Assembly: GCA_023213395.1 (NCBI GenBank) | Contig: CM041465.1 | Span: forward strand, 67,339,741 to 67,403,740 | DNA length: 64,000 nt | DNA from: Cycas panzhihuaensis | Taxonomy: Eukaryota > Plantae > Cycadophyta | Reading direction: 5' to 3' | Part shown: positions 1-46,470 of the stretch, piece after piece | Layout of the letters: every line of letters starts with the position of its first letter | Numbering within the stretch: the first letter of the stretch is position 1 | Notes under the pieces: generated by a model | What the model was told of the DNA's origin: nothing | Seen by the model: the letters and a program-made list of their open reading frames with translations, nothing else | Database searches by the model: none | Program-made: the position numbers and the translations under genes

Positions 1-2999
1 TTAGTTAATTAATGATTTGATGAGTTTGGTCTTGCAACTTATAAATGGAGATATGATGTTGTTGAGAAAGAAACTTCATACATCATGATGAATTAAGAGT
101 CATGAGTTATGATTATTTAATTGATTGATTGATGAATTTATAGGTGGTTGGTATGATACATTCTTATTATGTAATATGTTGATTATATAAGAAGATTTTT
201 TTAAAGGAGACAAATATAATGAAGATAGGTTTGACACATTGATGTATAAATGATATGGATGTAATGAGGATATAGACGAGTAAGTGAAGAACATAAAGAT
301 ATAGGATGAAGATACAAAGATAAAGATTTAAAATTTCCTATAAATTAAACATTTAAGGTTTGGGGGGGCGTCTTAGAAGTATTAGAATGTTAGTTTTCAC
401 CAATATCAATAAAATATTTAATTACTATATCAAGATTATCATTGGTTGATATAAAAGTTTTCAATACATATAGTCTAATGGGTTGATGTAATGATAAAAT
501 ATAATTGTATGATGATGAGATGATACATATACATAAGGGAAATACTTATTATAAAGAAACATGGATCACCTAGTCTTATTTGTGAGGATAGGATGACTCA
601 CCATGTGGTTCATTGATTAATATTATTAATATGAGATCTTAAAAATATTTAGAAGTGAGTTTTTTTTTTTGTAAGGTTTCCATTTTAAACATGATATATA
701 TATGGTGTATATATTATTAATTTTTATGCCCTTATCCTTATTCATTTATTATATACTTAATTGATCATGTGCTTATATTATATCCTACTTGATTGCATAA
801 TTCAACATAAAATATTTTACAAAATTTAATACTAATTCCATACTTCCCTTGAGCTTGTAGATTTGTTCTTTCTAAGGGGAAAGTCTATCCTATTCCCTAA
901 GGATAATAGACTTTAGGTTGACATATTGGTTGGTCTATTCGTAAATCTATTTGGCCCATTCCTAAGGTTTAGTGTTTGCCTTAAAAGTGAATCTCTTGAA
1001 TTCATCTTTAACCTCCTACTTTGTACCATTAATAAATGTGATATTATTTATAAACTCCTTTACTTTTAGAGAAAAGGGGCCATGAATGTCTATCTATTTA
1101 GTACTATATTTTAATAATTATAGGTTCTAAAACCTCCTTAGTGTCCTTAGTATAAGTAGTGATAAATTTTGCCTGACCCATATTTGAATCCAATATGTCT
1201 TTCTATTTAGTGATAAAAGGTCTAACTACTCTTGATTTTATGGCATGTATATATTTCATAAAAGTACTAAACTTGCTAAGCTCTTGCAATCTTATTTAAA
1301 GGAATCTTATACCCTATATGATATTTTCTTCAATCTCTAGATTCTCTTCTTTAATATAAATAATCTCTAGATAATATTCTATTAAAATGCATTTTATCAC
1401 ATCTTAGCAAAGAGAGATGTCCCTTGCGAAGGTAATAACTTTCACTTACCTATATAATTATTTCATTAGATTTATACTTTGGATTTTATTAGTTTCCTTT
1501 ATGAGATTATTATTATTGATGAGATAACTTATTTCATTAGCAAGTGCCAATTTTACTCCTAAGTTTGTGTGATATATCATTAATGAGACCATTCCCATGG
1601 TATACATAGAGGGGTAACCTCCTATTCTAAATAACAGAGAGCCAACATTGATATGTCCTCATATGATGTTGTTTGCCTCCTTGAGGAGGACTATGGAGAT
1701 GTGGGTAGTTGAGAACCATAAGTTCCAAACTAAGATTAGAGAGTTAGAGGGCCAAGGATAAGGGATAGTGGCACTAGTTGTTATAGATCCACTCAAGGTA
1801 CTACCAAGAGTGGGCGCATAAAGCATCAACCTTCGATCTTGATTAGACAAGGTCTAGAGAGAGAAGGAGACTTATTGTAAGCCAGGTATAATTTCCTCAT
1901 AGAGTAGGTGGTAGATAAGTCAAGACAAAATCAAAAAAAGATGTCCACATCCACTCCACATTAGTAAATAAGGGATGAGAGGAGCAAGGTGCACATATCA
2001 CAATGCCCCAGGCATAATGTAGAAGGTAGCACTAGGGCACCTATGAGGGGACCTATTTAAGAGGAGAGTGGCACACAATGAGGTGGTCTTTTAGACTTAG
2101 GGGTTTTCAGTAGAGGTAAGTAGACCACCAAGGATTAGAATATATGCATTATAGAGCCCATTTTGCAATTATAGACCTCTATAAGGATTCAAACTCTCTC
2201 ATGATATTTATGTATATAGATCTACTTGTTGTATCATATAATTATATATATATATATATATATAATGGATAAATAGATATGGGGATCTAATTTATGTTTC
2301 CTCATTCTTTCATTATATACTCTTTTGTGGATGCATGTGATTAGACTATATCATTTTCATTTGGATATATAATTTATTTTTATGTACTATTAAGTTGGTG
2401 TTTTTCTTGTATACAATATCATGGCATATGCAACACATAAAACATAATCATTAATCATGTTGGTATGCTTGTGGCTCAATATAATACAATGGGTAGATGT
2501 AAATTTATACTCATGGAGGAGTCTCATGCCCCCATTAGTGAGAAGGAATGCCCGTCTTAGAGTAAGGAGTGAATCATGGCCATGTAGTGGAATCACATCC
2601 TATGGGTGTGATGACACAAAAAGTAAATACACATTCTTTGGTAAATTTTTAGGGATTTTATGATTCTTTTTATAAGTTTTTAGATAATATTTATAAGTGA
2701 TAGTTTATACTCATGACATAGTAGGGTGCCCCCATGGGGCACTATCCTATTGATGGATAAGAATATAATAAGGTAATAGGCATGAATGCATCATGAATAA
2801 TAATAGTTTAAGCTCATTTTAGAGTAAGGTGTCCCCTATGGTAGTGTGTCAGCTATATTATTTTTTTAAGGAATTAATCATTGATATCCTTTTCAAACTC
2901 AATGCCTTCTAACATTGTAATTTGATAGGATCCATTGTCTAAACTCTACATAATGATGAATGAACTGACTTGTTTTAAACCAAGCTTTAATAAGTAGTC

Positions 3000-5592: not shown

Positions 5593-5605
5593 TGGTATCA
5601 AAGCC
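5593..5605 (+). promoter_or_regulatory. Primer-binding site (tRNA-iMet), Copia-1
   Basis: TGGTATCAAAGCC, 2 nt after the LTR end; consensus is TGGTATCAGAGC. Confidence 0.9.
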
Positions 5606-22918: not shown

Positions 22919-23019
22919 TTTGGTATCAAAGCTAAGGGTTTTAGTTATGTAGGAAGCTATTTGATAAGTGGCAACCTTGTGTGGTGAACTTGAGTGTAAA
23001 GATCACGGTAAGTACTACA

Positions 23020-32379: not shown

Positions 32380-33043
32380 GAAGAAATCCCAATTTGTCTC
32401 CGAATTTCTAAAATTTGACTTTGCCCAATACTTTTGGAAGATATCTAGTGCTTGGTCTTGAGTACTAAAACATACTAATTTAATCTCTTCTGTTTGCTCT
32501 AACTTTTAAATGAAGTGATGATGTATCTCAATATATTTTGTTCTTCAATGAAAAAATAGGTTCTTTGCCATTTGTATTGTACTCTGATTGTTATACCAAA
32601 TTCTTATGGGACCTTTCTGTTTTAGTCGAAAAGTCTTGGATTACTCTTTCCAACCATAATGTTTCATATACACCAGCAACTGCTGCTTTACACTCTACTT
32701 CAACTATATATAGAGAAATTATTTTTTGTTTCTTGGTGCTCCATGCTATAGCTGCCAATCCCATACTAAATATATAACCTGGAGTTGATTTTCTGTCATC
32801 GATATCACCTGCCTGATCTAAATCTATATAACCTATTAACCATAATTTTGATGAAGCTTTAGAATATAACCCGTATTTTGAAGTGCCTTTGAGATAACGA
32901 GGAATTCTTTTGGCTACTTGCCAATGAGTGGTCTTTGGATCTTACAAGAGTCTAGATACGATACTAACTGAATATGTTATATTAAGTTGAGTGGATATCA
33001 AATAGATCAAGCTACTGATTAGTTGTTTGTAGAATGTAGGATC
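32380..33043 (-). pseudogene. Element B RT C-terminus and RNase H
   Basis: DPTFYKQLISSLIYL, HWQVAKRIPRYLKGT, GDIDDRKSTPGYIF, WSTKKQK. Confidence 0.9.
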
Positions 33044-33610
33044 TAAAGGAAAAAATATGGAGCCAAAGTGCTCTGATACCAAATGAAGGAAAATATAGAG
33101 CCAAACTATGCTCTGATACCAAATGATGGAAATATAATAGCAGGACTATGCTCTGATACCAAATGATGGAACTAATAGCCAGACTATGCTCTAATACCAT
33201 ATAAAGGAATATATACTAGTAAGAGAACAGGTCAGAACATATATCAAATAACCATAAACTAGTATTGCATCAATACATCAATGTGTCACAATCATAATAG
33301 CATAAAGAGCATGAAAGCCTTGTTGTTCAATCCATTGTAGCAATAATGAGCATTACAAATCTCCTCAAAGGTAGGCGGTGTCTAAAGACACCAAGGTTGT
33401 ACACCCTATAATATAAATAGTTTTGAGGGAGGAGGGAAACTCATCAACCCCTGAATTCAAATTAATAATAAAATAATACAAACTTAACTCAAATGAAACT
33501 AACTCAACTTACCTTAACTTACCTTGACATGTTGAGCATCACATGTCTAAATTGAGGTGTACAATCCTGGTAGGTAAGAGGGAGTTGAGTGATGACATTA
33601 CACTCCAACA
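33044..33610 (-). repeat. Element C 3' LTR containing 4 internal PBS copies
   Basis: GCTCTGATACCA at 33070, 33110 and 33150, plus variant GCTCTAATACCA at 33188. Confidence 0.95.
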
Positions 33611-34347
33611 TTCTCCCCCTTAATGTCAACACGAACACTTGTATCTTTTCCTTGAACTTATGGAACTGGTACTTGAAAAAAACTTTGAAATTCTGATCTT
33701 GATCTTTATCATCTCTTCTCACCCTTATAGTCACATATATCTCTTTATCATAGAATGATGTAGGAAGACTATAAGTAGATGAAACTTGATGCAAATGTAG
33801 ATGAATAGCTGTAATTTGGACTTTATCAACTGGAACATTAGGAAGGCTTTGAACTTGAACTTTTGTAATCTTTATACTTTGAACAACTGTCATATCATCA
33901 GGTTCATTCTTCATTATGTTATAAGATTCATCTTCATGATGCTCCCCCTCAAATGGAGGATCAAATCCTTGTGCAACAAGGTGGTCCTGCATTTGATCTG
34001 AATCCTCATAGGTGTTATCGTCATGATCTACTTGTTCTATTACCTGTCTCACATGCTCATCAAAAAATTCATTAAATACATTTGGGGTATCTCCCCCATA
34101 AATGGAAATCAATAAATCCCAAACAGACTTAGATGTTGTTAATTCGTAAACCAAAGTGAAAAACATCATCAGTTATAGTGCAAAATAATAAACCTAAAAC
34201 TTCATTATCTTTTCTAAAAAATTTTTTAATGCTAAGGTCACATTCATCTTGTAAATACTTCAAAAGATCATACTCAATAAAGTAAGTTTGCATGGTGTCA
34301 TACCATAGTGAAAAGTTATGGCCATCAAAAATGGGGAATTGTGCCAT
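33519..34347 (-). pseudogene. Element C mini-ORF: Copia Gag N-terminal domain, acidic linker and RNase H-tail-like end (one frameshift)
   Basis: ORFs 34129..34347 and 33519..34169 join if one base is removed near 34155: FPIFDGHNFSLWYDTMQTYF...SKSVWDLLISIYGG...FHKFKEKIQV..LRGRML. Confidence 0.8.
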
Positions 34348-35734
34348 TTTGAAAGCAATGTAATCAATAAGAAAATAATGATGTGTTTGAAAGCAAACTT
34401 AAAAAATCTTTTTCACTTATGCAAAACTTGAAATAAACTTTTGAGAATAAATAGTTTTCAAAAAATGCCAATTTCTCACATAAGTAATGTAAATCTTCAA
34501 TATAAAAAAACTTCCTTTTTGTATAAAAGTAACTTTTCTTTGAGAAAAATATATATTACCTTATGAACAAATGCTGGTTCAAAACAACTTAAAAATGCTT
34601 GTAGAAAGATCAAGCAGAAACCTTGAGTAAACAATGAGATATGAACTAGAATTTTCTTTAAAATTTTGAAAAAATACAAGCTTATTGGGATGTACTTGTA
34701 TGCTCAACTTTAACAGCTTTAAAACTATACTTAATAATGTCAGAATAACTTAAGACTCTACCAATATGTAGATTAATGAGGTGTGAATCCAATGAAATAA
34801 ACGGTTTTGAAAATAGGTACCAATAAATCACGATTTGAATGAGTCAAAAGAATGGACCCCCTTATGGAGCCTAACAGGAGCAGGGTAGTCAAAATTTGCA
34901 TAAAATTACTAATTAACCTTTAGAAAAAGGTTGAACAAATGATCAAATATTGTTTATAAAGTAATCAATATTCTTTCAATTGAAAATTTTTGAAAAATAT
35001 ATTAAAAAGGTGTAAAAAACAGTAGATTTGAGGTAATAAGGTACCTCAAACTTGACTGATTTAAAATTCAAGAAGATAATGTCAAAATACATTAAAAAAT
35101 ATGTCAAAATGAAGAGAAATGAGTCATCTTCCCAACGAAGCTGACGGAATTGAAATCTGATAAAAAATGAAAAAGTTATAATGAAAAATGTAACAGGTAT
35201 TTTTATGTAGGATGTTAGGAAATAGGCAAAAATAACTAAATTCCTTATTTCAGCGATTAAAATATTAATGAAGGTGAACTCAAAAAATTAAAGTAAGAAG
35301 TAGGTTTTAAAGTCTATACAACGTAGATCACTATAGAGGTAATTTGGGCAAAAAACAGTTTACCAGTAATAAATGACAGCCAGTTCTATAAACGATTTTG
35401 TTAAAAATGCAAAAAAAACTGAAATTTTGAAAGTCTAATGTTAAAAATGGTCGAAACAGGGTCAAATTGGCACCAAATTGGTCATATGACTAGTCAAAAT
35501 TGGTGTACAGAAAATTTTTGATCTATTGGGGTAGGTTTCGTCTGAAATCGATAAGCTAGCGAGAAGTTATGGCTACAAAAGTGCCAATAACCCTATGAAA
35601 AATAAAATTTTAAAAAAAATAAAGGTTAAAAGATTAGATTATTAAAAATAGCTTCTTAAAAAATGGGCCTGAAGATGGACTGAGCTGGGATTGAATCCAA
35701 GATCAGTCAGACAATAAACGCCTCTGATACCAGG

Positions 35735-36715
35735 AGGGTGAACTCGCTCATCGAGTTAAAAAAACATAGAAGTTTAAAAACAATATGAGTAATAAAACGA
35801 AACGGCAAACGACAATAAACCAAAGTGCGGTTTAATGCAAATGCATTGAAGAACGCAATAGTGTAAAATGCAAACAAATAATGAACGGGCTGCACGTCGA
35901 GCTGCGAAAATAACGAGAGGCCAACACAAATAATGAAGACAAAATTGAGCCAATAGACGCAATAAATAATGATGCAAGATAAGCATTAGAATGAACGCGT
36001 CAATATATATAAAACAAATAATAACTCAAGCCTTAAATAATGACCGAGTCGAATAAGCCGATTAGTAGATGAGGCAAGCCTTGCACAAATAATGAACGCC
36101 AAGTCCAATGACCGACGCGGCAGGTCACAATAATGAAGCGGCAAATAAACGTCAGTACAACAAAAAACGAATATATAAGACACAAATGATAGTGCGCCGA
36201 TGAGGGCGCGATGAAGCACGGAACATAAGATGCAAATGTGCAGACCGAGAAAAAAGGAAGGAACAACGCAACTGCACGGAGGGCAGAATGGCCGACGAGC
36301 CTGCACGGAGGCCGAGGTATTAAAAACGGAAACGACAGAGCCAAACAAATGAATACAGACGGAACGAGCATGCACGGAGGCGGAGACCGAGGCGATGTAG
36401 GCCGAACGCGTAGACCCAGCGACGCAGGCCGACAATAAAGCGGCGATGCAGGCGAGGTAATAAATAATGCTGCAACGTGCCAATATCAGAATGAACGCGC
36501 CAACGGCAATATATATAATAAATAACGACGTAAGAGATGGAAGGCCCTTAGCTGCACCGCTGATTGTACAATGAATAGCAGAGATAATGAATGATTACAA
36601 GGCTTAGACGCAGGCCGAGCTAACACGGTGGCTGCGCGCCGATGTACAATAACGTAATGAATACGCTAGTAGACGCTGTTATTATTAGCGTCAAACGGGA
36701 GGATTAGCGATATAT
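35735..36715. repeat. CpG-rich degenerate repeat island inside C
   Basis: Recurrent AAATAATGA (35876, 35928, 35964, 36035, 36087, plus variants), TGCACGGAGG x3, AGAATGAACGCG x2. Confidence 0.7.
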
Positions 36716-37376: not shown

Positions 37377-38519
37377 TCACTTGCTACTCACTGGAAACAG
37401 ATTGTCCTGTACTTGGAAGATGTAGTCAAGAGCGTGGGTTCCACCCAAACGGGTTTTTCTTAGCCTTTTCAGCTTTTGCCAAAGAATGCACTGCAAAAGC
37501 ACATAGGCTTCACACAAAGCAAACCCTTCTTGGGGTTTTATCGCATCACCAATGATAACCAAAGAAATGAATGAAGGATGTTGGGCTTACGATGTTGGAT
37601 GGAATATTTCAAAACAAACATATATTTATACAAGAAAATATCATAGATATATTTTCAAATATGTTGCAGGTATATGAAAAAGGATACAGAGATTTTACAT
37701 AAATTTCTTCAAATAATATCAGTAAAACAATTTAATGGAGCAATATACTCATATAACAGAGTCACAATAGTGATAAAATTTTCAAATATTTTGAATAGAA
37801 TATATCATAAAAAATGCTTATATAAAAAAATTACAAAGAAATATATTGAACAGATATATAAAATGTGTGTAAATTTGAAAGGACCTGGAATACGCAGGTG
37901 TAGTTACCTTGATCTTGTGTATATCTTCTTCAAAAGGCTGAATATGCCTCAAATACTGTAGATCTGATAAACAGTCTTGAAAATATAGTCAAAAAATATG
38001 ATAAAAAATGTAGATCTGAGCTAAATGTAGCAGAAAATGCTGAAAAAACCTAATACAATAAGCAGATTTATAATAAAAATAGCAGATCTGAAGTAACAAA
38101 TTGCAGATATTTAAAGAAAACTTAATAACTTTTGTATGCAGCTGATGCTCTTTTGCAAATCTGCGAAAAATATCAAATAAGTAGACAAAAAAACTTGTAA
38201 ACTGTCAAAATATATGATAAATCTGTAGATCTGAAGAGAAAATAACTTAAATATGAGAATAAAACTTGAATGTATATAACTTGCTGCTAAAAATCCTACG
38301 TAGATCTGCACAAATCTGAAAATAGATTTCAGTAATATTTGTTGAACCAGAAATATAGCTCAATAATAATCAAAATCTACTGAAATAATACATAAAACTT
38401 GCTAAAATTTTTCAGAAAATAAATCTAGTTAATATATATTGCTTGTAAAAAAATCTGTTGTAGAATGCTAGTAGATCCTGTTGCTCTTCTTCAAAACTTC
38501 AGCAGGTCAGCAATCGCCT

Positions 38520-38771
38520 GCTCTGATACTAAATGTTAGAAATAATAATAGCAAGACTATGCTCTGATACCAAATGAAGGAAATAATGTTTGCAAGACTA
38601 TGCTCTGATACCAAATGAAGGAAAAAATATATAGCCAAAGTGCTCTGATACCAAATGAAGGAAAATATAGAGCCAAACTATGCTCTGATACCAAATGATG
38701 GAACTATAATAGCAGGACTATGCTCTGATACCAAATGATGGAACTAATAGCCAGACTATGCTCTGATACCA
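38520..38771 (-). repeat. Array of 7 tRNA-iMet primer-binding sites, ~38-41 bp period, variable spacers
   Basis: GCTCTGATACCA (reverse complement TGGTATCAGAGC) at 38520 (variant), 38561, 38602, 38642, 38682, 38722 and 38760. Confidence 0.97.
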
Positions 38772-39182
38772 TATGAAGGAATATAAACTAGTAGGAGAAC
38801 AGGTCAGAACATATATCAAATAACCATAAACTAGTATTGCATCAATACATCAATGTGTCACAATCACAATAGCATAAAGAGCATGAAAGCCTTGTTGTTC
38901 AATCCATTGTAGCAGTAATGAGCATTACAAATCTCCTCAAAGGTAGGTGGTGTCTAAAGACACCAGGGTTGTACACCCCATAATATAAATAGTTTTGGGG
39001 GAGGAAGGAAACTCCTCAACCCCTGAATTCAAATTAATAATAAAATAATACAAACTTAACTCAAATGAAACTAACTCAACTTACCTTAACTTACCTTGAC
39101 ATGTTGAGCATCACATGTCTAAATTGAGGTGCACAATCCTAGTAGGTAAGAGGGAGTTGAGTGATGACATTACACTCCAACA
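38616..39182 (-). repeat. Element C 5' LTR
   Basis: Same length as, and near-identical to, 33044-33610. Confidence 0.95.
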
Positions 39183-41584
39183 GGATCGACTGATGTAGAA
39201 TCATTTAATTTTGAGAGCTTAATTCCTATTTATACTGGAGTTGCCAATGATTTACAATCATTCATCCTAAACTTTTGTAATAGATCCAGGGTATATTTTT
39301 GTTGGGAGATGAAGATGCCATTCTTATCTTACCACACTTCCAAACCTAAGAAGTAATGTATTAGTCCAAAATCTATTATTTTAAACTCTTTATACATGGT
39401 TTCCTTAAAGTGTCACAACAAATGGGGGTCATTTCTAATATAGACAAGATCATCCACATAGAGTCCTATAATTAAGATAGAGTCTCTGTTGATTTGGATG
39501 TAGAGAATGGGGTCTGCTTGAGATCTTCCAAAGCCTTAATCTCTAGAGTATTTATCTATTCAGGAATACCAGGCCTTGGGTGCTTGTTTTAATCTATAAA
39601 GTGCCTTTTTAAGTTTGTACACTTTGTTTTCTACCTCACTGACTTCAAAACCTAGGGGTTGAATGGTATAAATATCCTCTTCAATATAACTATTAAGAAA
39701 GTCACTTTTAATATCCATTTGATAAACTTTCTATCATATTTGGGTGGCCAAATAAATCATTATCTGAACTATTTCCATCTGAACAATATGGGCAAATGTT
39801 TCATTGTAATCAATGCCTTCTTTTTGGGCATAACCCTTAACAACCAATCTAGCTTTGTATTTATCGATTGACTCATCTAAGTAAAACTTAATTTTATAGA
39901 TCCATTTGGTACCAATTACCTTTTTATTTAGAGGTAAATTAACCAATTCCAAAGTGTCATTTTTAATAATAGAATGGTATTCATCTTGTATTGCCTTTCT
40001 CTAATATGCATGTTCATTGGCCTCATCAAAAGTTTGAGGCTCATGGGAATCTGATACTTTGCTCATGAGAGTAAAATTTACCTTATGTGAGGGAGTGGAT
40101 CTTTGAGTGTTGTCTAATACGTTGCCTACATCATAATTTCGTTGAACCCATTTTGGAAGATTTTGTGGTGAAGGTTGAGAGGAGGTTCCCTCCCCACTAG
40201 GTTTATTGATAATTTGTCTAGAGTCAAACGTAAGAGCCACATACTTTGATTTGGTAGATTTATTAAAATTGATTACTACTTCTTTCTTATTTTCTTGAGT
40301 ATTTTAATAATAAGCATCTTCCTAAAATTTAACATCTCTACTCAACATGACCCTCTTTGACTTAAGATCATAAACTTTGTACAATTTGGAGGTTTTGATA
40401 TAGCCAAGAAATATACATTTGATACTGTGGTTAATCTAACTTGGATCTCCTTTAGTTAGGAACATGTGCATATGCTAAGCACCCAAAGACTCTTAGGTGA
40501 TGAATGTTTGGTTTACAGTCAGTCCAAGTTTCTTCAGGTGTTTTCCACCTTAAGCGTTTGGTGGAGCACTTATTAAGAAGATAGACAAATGTATGAACTA
40601 CTTCTATCCAAAATTCATAACCTAAGTTCTTATCCTTCAACATGTACCTTGTCATTTTGATAATTATGTGATTATTCCTTTTTACTATACCATTTTACTG
40701 TGGGGTGTAGGGATTGGTGATTTGCCTTCTAATTTTATGATATATACAATATATTTTAAATTCATTAGAGATAAATTCTATCATATTATCTGATCTTAAA
40801 GAAAGCATCTTGTACCCACTTTGTCACTCCATAAAGATTTTGAAGTTAACAAAGTATTGAAATGCATCTAATTTAAATTTAAAGAAGAATACCTATGTCT
40901 TCTTAGTGTAATCATAAATGAACATTGTTAGGAATATTAATGTTAGTTTTATATTCATGTTACTTTATGTTATCTTTTATATCACATGTGTAAATATAAA
41001 TTTAAGTGATATAAAGGTCTAATTTTATAAAGTTTATGTTAATACTTAATTATTATGCGAAGGTCATTGAAATACACAATTACCCATTTAAACAAACCTC
41101 TATTTCTATAAATAACCTCTCTTAGATTCTAGTAATACGTTCTGAGAATCTAGGAGGCTGTCAAAAGCCTGGTTTCAAAGGCTAGTTTATGTCTGTATGG
41201 TTTTAGGTTTCTTGTCAATTTTCTAAGTCAATAAAATATTAGATTAGTGAGGTGGTTTTTCTTCTCCATAAAGGGTTTTCTACCTGTCAAATACTGTGTA
41301 CGTGTGCAATGTTTCATTTTACCTGTGTATGTTAATTTCTTTAATCCTGTGACATAGTGCATGTTACCCATTATCACAAACATAATAAAGTAGCGAGATC
41401 TTACTAATGAGGGGACATCCATTAGACTGTATATATTTGTATATACTAACGAAACTGGATCAGTTGCCAGATAAGATGGTCATTTTCATTCTTTTCATTA
41501 AGGATAAACTATTATAGTTAAGATGGTCAAATCTCTTATGCCATAAGTCACTATCCACTTTAACTATAGTTCTTAAGGCATAGG
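39183..41584 (-). pseudogene. Element B integrase and RT (split by solo LTR D)
   Basis: LWHKRFDHLN, RYFIMFI|YDYT, WKTPEETWT..HLRVFGCLAYAHVP, IGTKWIYKIK, YKARLVVKGYAQKEGIDYNETF, LKKALYRLKQAPKAWY, LYVDDL. Confidence 0.92.
40926..41378 (+). mobile_element. Solo LTR D (453 bp) inserted in the integrase of B
   Basis: TGTTAGG...ATCACA, TSD AACAT (40921-40925 / 41379-41383), CTATAAATA near 41106; removal restores RYFIMFIYDYT. Confidence 0.92.
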
Positions 41585-41906
41585 TATAGGTTTCTTGCAA
41601 AGAATAAAGCAGAACAGTAAACCATAACAACTTAATCCTTATTGTAAAAGATGTGAAATATCATTTGTATTAATCCATATTACTCAAAGTATATGAAATG
41701 TTCCTTGAAGAGGTGATGTTAATGAACATTAGAGGAGATAACCCCATGGAATATATACTCTTGAGGGAGGAGAGAAACCTCCTTAGCCTTTAATTTAAAT
41801 TAATATTAAATAATAGTCAACATTAAATACACTTACCTAACTTACCTTTGAGGCTTGTCTATTGCATACTCTAATGTGGGGTCATGTGATGAGCATTAAC
41901 CCAACA

Positions 41907-42618
41907 TTCTCCCCCTAAATGGTCATCACATACATCTTTATCTTATCTTTGAACTTGTGATATTTAAACTTAAGAATAATTTTGAATACGTGTCCTTTAG
42001 CTTTATTATCATTTGTGAAGTGATTATCAACTTACCTTGTCATCCTTTTAATAATATGTGTCTCTTTAGTATTATATGGTTCAAAAAATCTCCAAATAAG
42101 TGTAAAGTACTTCAAATGGGGATGAGTGGCTGCAGCTTTAACTTTATTTTTTAGAATCTTTACTTTATGAGTAGTTATCATATCATAAGGTTTCTCCCTT
42201 TCAAATAAAAGATCTTCATGTGCAGTAATGTGATAATTCATTTGACTTGAGTCTTCTTCATTAGTATTTTCAACACCATAAACCTACTCTAACATCTGTC
42301 TCACATTTATAATAATAACATAGTCAAACTCATTCACATTGAGGATTTCACCCCCATAAATAGATGCTAAGGTATCCCATACAGATTTGGATGTGGTCAT
42401 TTCATAAACATAAAAAAATACATTATCATCTATGGTGCAAAATAATATGGCTAAGGTCTCATTGTCCTTCTTTAGATCTCCTTTAATATTTTGTTCATAT
42501 CTTTGACATATTTCTAAAGATCATATATAATAAAGTATGTTTGCATTATTTTGCTCCATCCTTAGAAATCATTACCATAGAATATAAGAAATCTTATCTT
42601 ATTTAAATTCATTGCCAT
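41907..42618 (-). pseudogene. Element E mini-ORF, homologous to that of C (decayed)
   Basis: KDNETLAILFCTIDDNVFFYVYEMTTSKSVWDTLASIYGGE...KYHKFKDKIKMYVMTI. Confidence 0.85.
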
Positions 42619-42838
42619 TGAAAAAGGACTTTAGTACATAATTGAAAAAGTATAATTTTCAAATAAGAAGATAAATCCTTAAATGAGCACTTATGATTTT
42701 TAATGCACTTTTGATAAATGAAGTAAATGATAAAGATATTCCTTCTAAATGATCCAAAAAGAATGCAAGCTAATGTGTTTTAAAAAATAATAAATCAATG
42801 ATGAAAATAAATTATCAATGATGTAGTTTTGCTTAGGG

Positions 42839-42844
<6 letters not shown>

Positions 42845-42910
<66 letters not shown>
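42845..42910. repeat. (TA)n microsatellite
   Basis: Uninterrupted AT run. Confidence 0.98.
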
Positions 42911-42912
<2 letters not shown>

Positions 42913-45900
42913 AAAAGAAAAAACTTAAAAGAAGAGCAATATCCACTAAGCAAGATTGAATAAATGATATAATAAACATTTGAATAAAATATTCAAGCAA
43001 TAACTTCTTTGACAAACCAAAAAAGAAATGTAATGCCTTTGAAATTGAAATGATCTTTTGAAAGTAAAGTGCACAAACAACTATATACAACCTTTACAAG
43101 AGGAATAACGAATCAATAAAGCTTCTAACAAGTGAAATTTGTATGCATATAATGGTCAAGAAGTGAGTTGTAATTATGTTTGTGCTATTCACTTTTTTAA
43201 AAAATATGCCTTTTGAATGAATAAGAAAGCTAATTAACTAATCAACTTAGGATGTATGAATATGATTATAGATATTCTTGAAATAAGATAAACAAATAAG
43301 AAAAAAGTCCTTTGTAGGTTTATAAACGAACTAGGTAGAATCTTTCATGCAAAGTAAATAAGACATTTTAGGTATACAAATTTGAAATAAAATCCTCTAG
43401 ATGATGGAAAAAATAGAGAAGATTGATAAAATTATTTTATATAAGCTTTGAATTTCAAACAAATAAAGAATAACTTGAGTAAAGAAATGACCCCTTTTTC
43501 AATACAAAATGAGTAATTATTCTTTTGAAATTGATAAAAATAAGAAGTTGAAATACAAATTTGCTTTTAATAATAAAAATGCTTGAAAGAAGGTAACTTT
43601 CTTATTAAAAATAAATAACTAATTCTTCAAATAAATAATATTGATGAAATGCACCTTCCTTTTCCTATTTTAATATGATGAAGAAATAATAAGCATGTAT
43701 ATGTCTCTTCTGAATACTTTTAGCAAATATAAATTCAAATTGTATTCAATACAATGAAGTATTTAAATAAATCTTAAAGTTTTCCAATAGGGATAAGTGG
43801 CTCAAGCAAGTCAATTGAAAATAAAATGAATTCCTTTTCAAATATATGAAAGATAATTTACTATATTTTTTACCACAAGTAAAGATGTATAAGACAATAG
43901 TTCTAAAATATATATTTTTCTTTAAAAATATAAAAAATATTAAGAAAAGCTTCCACTAAGAGAGTTCAAAATAAACAAATGTACCTGTTTTGATATGTAA
44001 GTCCACTTAGCTTGTTGATCACTTTAGGTGTATGAAATCTATCTTCTGTTGCAAGTCACCTTAAGAAAACTATACAAGAACCAAATAAAATCTTCAAAAA
44101 TATATAATGAATAATTAATAAAGTAAATATAACTTGGTTGAAATAAAAACTCCTTAAAGAGTTAAGGAAATAAGCATGTTAGGGTAAAACTGGATGCTCA
44201 AGTTTACTAGCTCCAAAGTCTTTCTAAACAATATCAGATTAAATGAAACTATACTAGATTGAAGTATATTAAAATATCTCTCCAACAAATTTGATCGTTT
44301 TGAAAATAAGCTCCTACAACTCAAGATATTAATGATAAAGTTAAATGACCCATTTTTGGGGCTTAACTAAAGCTAGGGAGCTCAAAAAGTTACAAAATAC
44401 TAACAAAAACTTTATGAAATAATGTAAAAAAGATTAAATAAAAATTAGAAGCTTCTTAATATGCCTTAAGTCGATTAAACTTTAGAAATAATGTCTTAAA
44501 AAATATGAAATAATGAAGAACTAGGAGAACTTGAGTACCTTCACTTTATTAGCTTTGAACATCTACAAAACGACTTCAAAACATGCAAAGAAATATATCA
44601 GTACAAGGAGAAATGAGTTAACTTTCCAATAAAACTACCAGATTTGAAATCTGATGTCAAACGGAAGAGTTGTGCCAAAAATAGTGAGGGGTCCTTTTTA
44701 AATTTAATAAATCAAAGGCTAAAAAAAAAGGTTGACTTTAGATCATTGAAAAATATGTCAAATCTGATCCAAAAATAGCAAGTAACTAGTCTACATTATA
44801 ACCCTCAAAACTTTAATTGCAATGGAATAAGTTTCATCAGAAACAGGTGCTCCAGCAAGAAGATATAGCAAAAAAAGCCAGGTACCCTTTATATAAAAAA
44901 TAATTTTAAAAAATAAAAGTAAATTTTGATAAACTTAAATTAGCCTCTTTAAAAAAATAATCTAAAGGTCACATGAACATGGCGGGACTAGGGGCTAGTG
45001 CCTTGAGGGGGCTTAAGCCTTATAAAAAAGATTTGAAATAGTATAAAATCTAATTAAATTTATTTAACCTTTTACAAAGTAATATTAATCAAATTAAAAA
45101 AGGTGAATAGCGTTGAAACATTGAATGATAAGGCAACTACACAGGAAGAAAATTATCGAATAAAGATGTGAATCTGATTAGAAAATGATTGATTCACATC
45201 GATCTTAGATGTAAAGGAGGGGAACGATGAATCCTCTAGACGGACTAAGACAGAGGGTGTCAAAAAATGATTGAAATGTTAGAGCAATTAAGAAATGAAT
45301 AACATCGAATGGTAAATAGCGATCTGCGTAGGTGGCTTTTTAGTATAACCAGAGGAGAAAACATTCACAGATCAATTAATTCAGAGATGCAAGGAGGGGC
45401 AGTTGATCTACCAACCGGATTAGGTCTAAACGATCAAAGAAAAATCAATTTAAATTTATGTATTATATGAGAAAACACAGAGAACAACCACAGCGGTGCA
45501 CGACGAATAGAGAGGATGGTGAATATAATAATGCTAAATAGGGGCTAAAGAACATTGATTAATCTCAGATTTGAGCTGAGATAAGTAGACAAGAGGCACT
45601 TGAGGGGAGTAGACTCAAATACACAAAAAAAATTCAAAAATATTGACAAAAAATAAAGGAGTATAGTGAAAACCTTCAAACGGGAGCCAGGATCTTTCTT
45701 TATAAGCTACAAAATGAGACAAATTTTGACAGGCAGTAAGGTATCCTAGGTAATAAGGGGCTCATAAAGTTTCACAATGAATTTATACTTTTATACTGAG
45801 AACAGGTGTGCAGACCAAAAAGAAGCTAAACAAAGTGACTGTCAAACAAACTAAAAGAACTCACAGTATAACTAACGACAACACAAACAATTTCTTGCAC

Positions 45901-46470
45901 TAGCTCGCTAGTTTAGCAAGGAACACAATGAGTAGTCATATGCTTATGTTTTGAACACTGGATTTGATGCACAGGCCTATCGAATCAAGGCTATATAGTC
46001 ACCCAAAACTAAATGTGAGATAAAAATTATGAATTAAAAATATGAACTGAAATAATTTTAGAATATATAAAGTTAAACTTTAATATATTGAAACCAAATG
46101 AACATAGTCAAAGATGAGATGTGAGATATCCAAGAAATAATGTGACACTCTGATACCAAATATAGGTTTCTTACGAAGAGCTGAGTATAGAAGTAAACCA
46201 TAACAACTTAATCCATATTGTAAAAGATGTAAAATATCATTTGTATTAATCCATATTGCTCAAAGTATATGAAATATTCCTTGAACGAGTGTTGTTGATG
46301 AACACCGTGGGAGATAATCATATGAAATATATACTTTTGAGGAAGGAGAGAAACCTCCTTAACCTTCAATTCAAATTAGTATTAAATTAAATACACTTAC
46401 CTAACTTACCTTTGAGGCTTGTGCATTGCATACTCCAATGTTGGGTTATGTGATGAGCATTAACCTAGTA

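Follow-up and report, generated by a model that had tools for sequence, protein, structure and literature searches.

An array of tRNA primer-site junctions suggests a sliding LTR boundary in a non-autonomous retrotransposon of Cycas panzhihuaensis

Repeats at reverse-transcription priming sites in described systems

In the standard model of reverse transcription U5 ends, on its 3′ side, where the tRNA has primed, and LTR ends are usually taken as fixed landmarks set by one primer site. The closest described systems are vectors based on MLV and HIV that carry two primer sites, both of which reportedly initiate, with a start at the downstream site yielding LTRs that are extended over the upstream one. 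The array reported here, which lies in a stretch of 64,000 nucleotides from the cycad Cycas panzhihuaensis (GCA_023213395.1, contig CM041465.1, 67,339,741 to 67,403,740; hereafter the window), resembles these vectors in that upstream primer sites end up in the LTRs after downstream priming. However, the vectors were engineered to hold two sites that match the same tRNA or different ones, whereas the array is natural, comprises seven units, contains a copy of the LTR terminus in each of them and is spread in a genome.

Tandem repeats beside the polypurine tract are familiar from Tat/Ogre and other plant LTR elements, and Sireviruses possess multiple polypurine tracts. Similar to these, the array consists of short non-coding tandem repeats that lie beside a reverse-transcription priming site and vary between copies. 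Their repeats are, however, located at the plus-strand primer end (3′ side) and leave the LTR boundary unmoved, whereas the repeat unit of the present array is itself made up of the U5 terminus and the minus-strand primer site. More generally, plant LTR elements are well known to contain tandem repeats in their LTRs and untranslated regions (bioRxiv 10.1101/2021.07.15.452536). The carrier of the array shares with LARDs and TRIMs the LTR pair, the 5-bp target-site duplication, the tRNA-Met primer site, the polypurine tract and the lack of pol genes. A survey of LARDs and TRIMs in sugar beet gives one primer site per family and describes tandem arrangements of whole elements, primer-site arrays being unmentioned (PMC13570524); such tandem arrangements of whole non-autonomous elements are known (PMC13570524; PMC7215508). 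Full-text literature searches, from whose coverage many subscription papers are excluded, turned up no report of primer site and LTR terminus being arrayed together in nature. The array is also reminiscent of CRISPR in that short repeats of identical sequence are separated by stretches that are similar in length and differ from one another. Unlike in CRISPR, the spacers are diverged copies of a single sequence, the repeats are complementary to a tRNA, and the locus is eukaryotic and has no acquisition machinery.

The array and the element that carries it

With at most one mismatch allowed, the 12-mer TGGTATCAGAGC was found 15 times in the window, compared to 0.14 matches expected by chance. 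Seven of these matches are located at 38520-38771 on the minus strand and four at 33070-33199. The seven 12-mers of the array are perfect in six cases, the remaining one (unit 7, 38520-38531) reading TAGTATCAGAGC, with TAG where the others have TGG. As most contigs aligned at position 38530 exhibit the other letter in all four sequencing runs compared (see below), this change is particular to the present copy. At 38519-38786, Tandem Repeats Finder reported a repeat with a period of 40 that is present in 6.7 copies with 79% matches. On the element (minus) strand each unit of about 40 bp is composed of TGGTATCAGAGC, a spacer of 24-27 nt with TTCCATCA, TTCCTTCA or TTCTAACA at its end, which resembles an LTR terminus (...CA), and then TT. 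The claim of the first-pass annotation that the locus is an array of seven junctions, each made of an LTR end, 2 nt and a tRNA-iMet primer site, with six perfect 12-mers and one bearing a single change, thus agrees with the 12-mer search, Tandem Repeats Finder and the splitting into units. An RNA-family search of the array yielded only sub-threshold chance matches (snoRNA-like) and no match to a miRNA precursor.

The array belongs to an element of 6.1 kb with a 5-kb interior, here called element C, whose two LTRs of 567 bp each are 96.99% identical over 565 bp (self-BLAST; alignment of 32950-33720 against 38440-39290). The 5′ LTR (38616-39182, minus strand) starts with TGTTGGAG, ends with TTCCTTCA and matches 33046-33610, whereas the 3′ LTR (33044-33610, minus strand) starts with TGTTGGAG and ends with TTCCTTTA; the termini accordingly read TGTTGG at the start and ...TTCA (5′) or ...TTTA (3′) at the end. 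A perfect 5-bp target-site duplication, GATCC, flanks the element on the minus strand, with one copy directly upstream of the 5′ LTR (39183-39187) and the other next to the 3′ LTR (33039-33043). As these copies lie outside both LTR ends, the LTR boundaries are fixed independently of the repeat. At commonly used plant substitution rates, the divergence of about 3% between the LTRs suggests that the insertion is roughly 1-2 million years old.

With these boundaries the LTR end falls between units 4 and 5, which leaves four units inside the LTR, one abutting it and two downstream. This arrangement, already described in the first-pass annotation, is borne out by the LTR alignment and the GATCC flanks. 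Units 1-4 (38614-38771, minus strand; 12-mers at 38760-38771, 38722-38733, 38682-38693 and 38642-38653 from the 12-mer search and unit split) occupy the last ~160 bp of the 5′ LTR, and their primer-site copies are now part of U5. The LTR end is followed by 2 nt (TT, 38614-38615) and then by the primer-binding site of unit 5 (38602-38613, minus strand). Units 6 and 7 (38520-38572, minus strand; 12-mers 38561-38572 and 38520-38531) lie downstream of unit 5 and are followed by unique leader sequence. The 3′ LTR includes the same four units in register, with 12-mers at 33188-33199, 33150-33161, 33110-33121 and 33070-33081.

Upstream of its 3′ LTR, element C contains the polypurine tract AAGGGGGAGAA (33611-33621, minus strand), directly adjacent to the LTR. 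For copia families, a tRNA-Met primer site with this 12-mer, a gap of 2 nt between it and the LTR and such a polypurine tract have been tabulated (PMC3852365); element C possesses both hallmarks, with TGGTATCAGAGC separated from the LTR by 2 nt and AAGGGGGAGAA preceding the 3′ LTR. The window contains no tRNA gene with which the primer site could be compared directly. The interior holds no ORF longer than 216 aa, no Pfam family was found in the four ORFs scanned (ORFs only, not all-frame read-through), and the 216-aa ORF has neither homologues nor a Pfam family that could be found. Gag-pol with integrase before reverse transcriptase was not encountered in the ORFs of element C, and its classification as a Ty1/copia-type LTR retrotransposon is therefore a putative one in which the superfamily is assigned from non-coding features only. 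Because there is no long ORF, no Pfam family in the ORFs scanned and no homologue of the longest one, element C, being several kb long and possessing the above hallmarks, is a non-autonomous, LARD-like element.

Several further features of element C were observed. A primer-site-like 12-mer, TGGTATCAGAGG, lies deep in the interior (35721-35732, minus strand) without an LTR copy alongside; the interior may be chimeric, or this site may be the fossil junction of another element. The stretch 35986-36483 is locally richer in G+C and contains overlapping ORFs of 112-165 aa, which are without a Pfam family. A hairpin with the stem GGTGTC/GACACC and the loop TTTA is present in the 5′ LTR (38924-38969, minus strand) and at the matching place in the 3′ LTR. 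It scored below threshold against the histone 3′ stem-loop model (23 bits versus a gathering score of 34, E=7e-4) and could be a processing or termination signal of the element transcript.

The related sister element E (41585-46400, minus strand; LTRs near 41585 and 46161) resembles element C in its LTR start and in its polypurine tract, the same motif preceding its 3′ LTR. It exhibits a single primer site, TGGTATCAGAGT (46147-46158), 2 nt after the LTR, just as the first-pass annotation had noted; the single site which was likewise ascribed to a "host B" could not be recovered, no 12-mer with two or fewer mismatches being located near the 32093/51359 repeat pair. Elements C (34078-34293) and E (42336-42546) have a 216-bp stretch in common (69% identity), which overlaps the 72-aa and 216-aa ORFs of element C and for which no Pfam family or homologue was found. 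Two other LTR elements in the window (repeat pairs 4939/9384 and 22688/27152) contain one primer-site variant each, TGGTATCAAAGC, at 5593-5604 and 22921-22932 on the plus strand, followed by a gag-like ATG leader.

Variant copies and unrelated elements

Parts of the region were found in twenty sequencing runs from 12 studies. Contigs of four of these runs, which represent four organisms, were aligned to 37500-39500, and ten to eighteen thousand short contigs matched per run, so the family must be very abundant. Some contigs are joined differently from the present copy inside the array, stepping back 40 or skipping 81, and in others the body of U5 runs into later units with only a few letters between; rare contigs join the primer site directly to about 38832-38835. 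As judged from these joints, other copies carry forms of the array that differ from this one. The contigs are about 100 nt long and were placed on the most similar unit, which makes variant forms but not exact unit counts visible, and as depth is one figure per contig, copies were not counted from depth profiles. In run X1 the match of five short contigs begins precisely at the CA of unit 6 (38534), the letters before it being dissimilar (agreement 0.6), which is suggestive of LTRs that end one register further on, at unit 6.

Metagenome contigs were scanned for triplets of the 12-mer at spacings of 20-45 nt, which yielded 14 loci in 10 unrelated groups; at least two of these groups (L001/L004/L007 and L014) are unrelated repeats, and the classification covered the loci other than L002, L003, L009 and L011. 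The same triple pattern gave no match in 596 Gb of prokaryotic genomes and none in viral contigs. One LTR element (L006, with L012 and L013) contains the sequence ...CCAACA + AT/AAT + 12-mer three times, with two of the three primer sites inside both LTRs and the third abutting the LTR. In another element (L008) the unit is ...CTACAACA + AG/AT + 12-mer; about seven such units are present on the 5′ side, and the 3′ LTR includes one or two. No pol domains were found in L006 and L008. The same grammar of CA, 2-3 nt and 12-mer is shown by the partial contigs L005 and L010. From their sequences, primer-site arrays thus evidently recur in LTR elements unrelated to element C, namely the L006 family and L008. 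The array is neither unique to this locus nor invariant, given the variant contigs and these other elements; uniqueness and invariance were outcomes which the first-pass annotation had named as speaking against its reading.

The two LTRs of L008 (8440-8960 and 6230-6480) differ by about 100 nt in the primer-site repeat region, which could reflect either an out-of-register replication event or a later rearrangement. The partial contig L009 includes three units of 40-50 nt (160-261, minus strand), and its primer site presumably matches the 3′ end of the initiator tRNA over 16 nt (the 12-mer followed by CAGG). L001/L004/L007 and L014 were rejected as retroelement arrays, being repeats in bacteria-like contigs. 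In the former group (L001:14-118, L004:2650-2761, L007:4681-4778) a 21-bp tandem repeat with the same 12-mer occurs at contig ends and adjoins bacterial-type sugar-metabolism genes, and is a look-alike that has no relation to retroelements.

Priming, the LTR boundary and alternative explanations

Units 1-4 exhibit the same unit-specific differences in both LTRs. Four units which are common to both LTRs and carry unit-specific variants indicate that the array predates the insertion and passed through reverse transcription. Since the LTR ends 2 nt before the site of unit 5, we infer, under the standard model of reverse transcription, that the source RNA of this copy already contained the array and was primed at unit 5. 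As an LTR can take in primer sites only when priming has occurred downstream of them, the upstream sites that were carried into both LTRs, four in element C and two in L006, demonstrate at least one outward shift of the LTR boundary by downstream priming. These observations are best read as those of a duplicated junction in which the tRNA primes at alternative copies and thereby makes the LTR boundary slide.

The repeat itself is a tandem duplication of the junction, each unit spanning the terminal ~24 nt of U5, the gap of 2 nt and the primer site. The spacers can be aligned to the part of U5 in front of the first 12-mer (38772-38797, minus strand), which ends with TTCCTTCA + TA. This likeness becomes clearer at position 38792, where most of the aligned contigs carry the letter of the spacers. 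As the spacers are 63-86% alike in pairwise comparison and resemble the end of U5, they are diverged duplicates of its last ~24 nt rather than acquired, foreign DNA. The closest pairs are neighbors (units 1 and 2, 0.86; units 3 and 4, 0.80; units 5 and 6, 0.79), and this points to local duplication rather than ordered addition at one end. A candidate for an older fossil unit deeper in U5 (38815-38826), sought by local alignment of "unit 7 + leader" against upstream U5, amounted to only an 8-mer, which was matched by 370 of 2000 shuffles; with the rare contigs in which a primer site joins directly to about 38832-38835, it is kept as a lead only.

A mechanism can be proposed on this basis. As every unit copy retains a primer site and a CA-ended terminus, reverse transcription could start at more than one copy. 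The copy that is primed sets the end of U5, and everything upstream, including older primer sites, is copied into both LTRs. In the last cycle unit 5 was primed, by which units 1-4 became LTR sequence and units 6 and 7 were left in the leader, while priming at a different unit in other cycles would let the LTR end slide in 40-bp steps. Units might be gained or lost by template switching between the identical 12-mers. The 12-nt site, which we take to correspond to positions 65-76 of the plant initiator tRNA, stops before the modified purine 64, so the 12-mer would be the natural 3′ end of strong-stop DNA. Alternatively, plus-strand strong-stop DNA ending in the 12-mer might anneal out of register to any complementary copy. 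The array would remain functional because a unit leaves descendants only if its primer site is intact and its end is a proper one. Taken as a whole, the explanation by tandem junction duplication, priming at multiple units, a sliding LTR end and the status of a by-product is considered probable.

The alternative that survives best is an ordinary minisatellite, in which slippage or unequal crossing-over expanded the 40-bp repeat, a single site primes and the other units are passive cargo. Neighboring units being most alike is what any tandem repeat would show, tandem repeats are common in the LTRs and untranslated regions of plant LTR elements (bioRxiv 10.1101/2021.07.15.452536), and the predicted RNA fold of the array does not surpass that of shuffled sequences (z=+0.59). 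Yet sites enter the LTR only if priming occurred downstream at least once, and the identical unit sets in both LTRs indicate that no slippage has taken place since the insertion. Neutral decay would also not leave the observed pattern of conservation. Among units 1-6 none of the 16 columns of the 12-mer, CA and TT vary, compared to 20 of 25 other columns (hypergeometric P=2e-7), and at the level of single cells 0 of 72 versus 36 of 174 are variant (Fisher P=1.6e-6), although the alignment of units was anchored on the 12-mer, which inflates variability in the indel-rich middle. The comparison of primer site and CA with the spacers that had been proposed in the first-pass annotation therefore came out clearly, with the 12-mer, CA and TT being far better kept. 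Together with the occurrence of the same grammar in unrelated elements, this renders a plain minisatellite unlikely.

The conservation fits with each unit having to retain a working primer site and a proper terminus; it fits equally with primer sites being re-copied from the tRNA on each use. The copy of unit 1 in the 3′ LTR has a change inside the 12-mer, and the constraint on the 12-mer is accordingly gone after insertion.

A further alternative is that the array is useful to a non-autonomous element, either by offering more landing sites for tRNA with the reverse transcriptase of a helper or by soaking up or diverting small RNAs directed at the iMet primer site, such as miR845, miR1511 and 3′ tRNA fragments. 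It is in line with this idea that all three complete array-bearing elements seen lack pol domains, that the primer site and terminus are conserved in every unit and that miR845 or miR1511 have been reported to target this primer site in plants (PMC7197481; PMC9780303). However, three elements are too few and small elements fit more easily into short contigs, the conservation is explained equally well by the need for a used unit to be intact, and extra target sites could just as well raise silencing. A benefit through more primer landing sites or an interplay with miR845/miR1511 is thus possible, but as the actual explanation of the array it appears improbable. It is more likely that the array is mainly a tolerated by-product of error-prone reverse transcription.

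The proposal of the first-pass annotation that the array is CRISPR-like and records replication history can be dismissed almost entirely. In such a recorder each cycle would add a unit with a new spacer at one end, and the order would reflect the history; the spacers do all differ between identical repeats, but they are homologous to one another and to the end of U5, their similarity is pairwise between neighbors and not graded from one end, and nothing foreign has been captured.

Alternative priming within a duplicated junction, the preferred reading, might also have a wider significance. It can be speculated that a natural "sliding-register" mode of replication exists in many unrelated LTR retrotransposons, in which the junction duplicates, priming alternates and the boundary moves by whole units, providing a route by which U5 grows and tandem repeats arise and of which non-autonomous elements may take advantage in capturing primer and enzyme; this generalization is tentative and at present rather doubtful.

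The elements described here show that downstream priming at a duplicated junction is a rarely described, recurrent way for LTRs to grow. Such arrays provide evidence from nature that reverse transcription can begin at a shifted position and that LTRs can become longer or shorter in quantized steps, which bears on the origin of U5 regions and of LTR-borne tandem repeats. It also bears on LTR-based dating and annotation, as boundaries will be misplaced by software designed for a single primer site just after the LTR, on the competition of non-autonomous elements for the machinery of their helpers, and on the way in which small RNAs directed at the iMet primer site encounter their targets.
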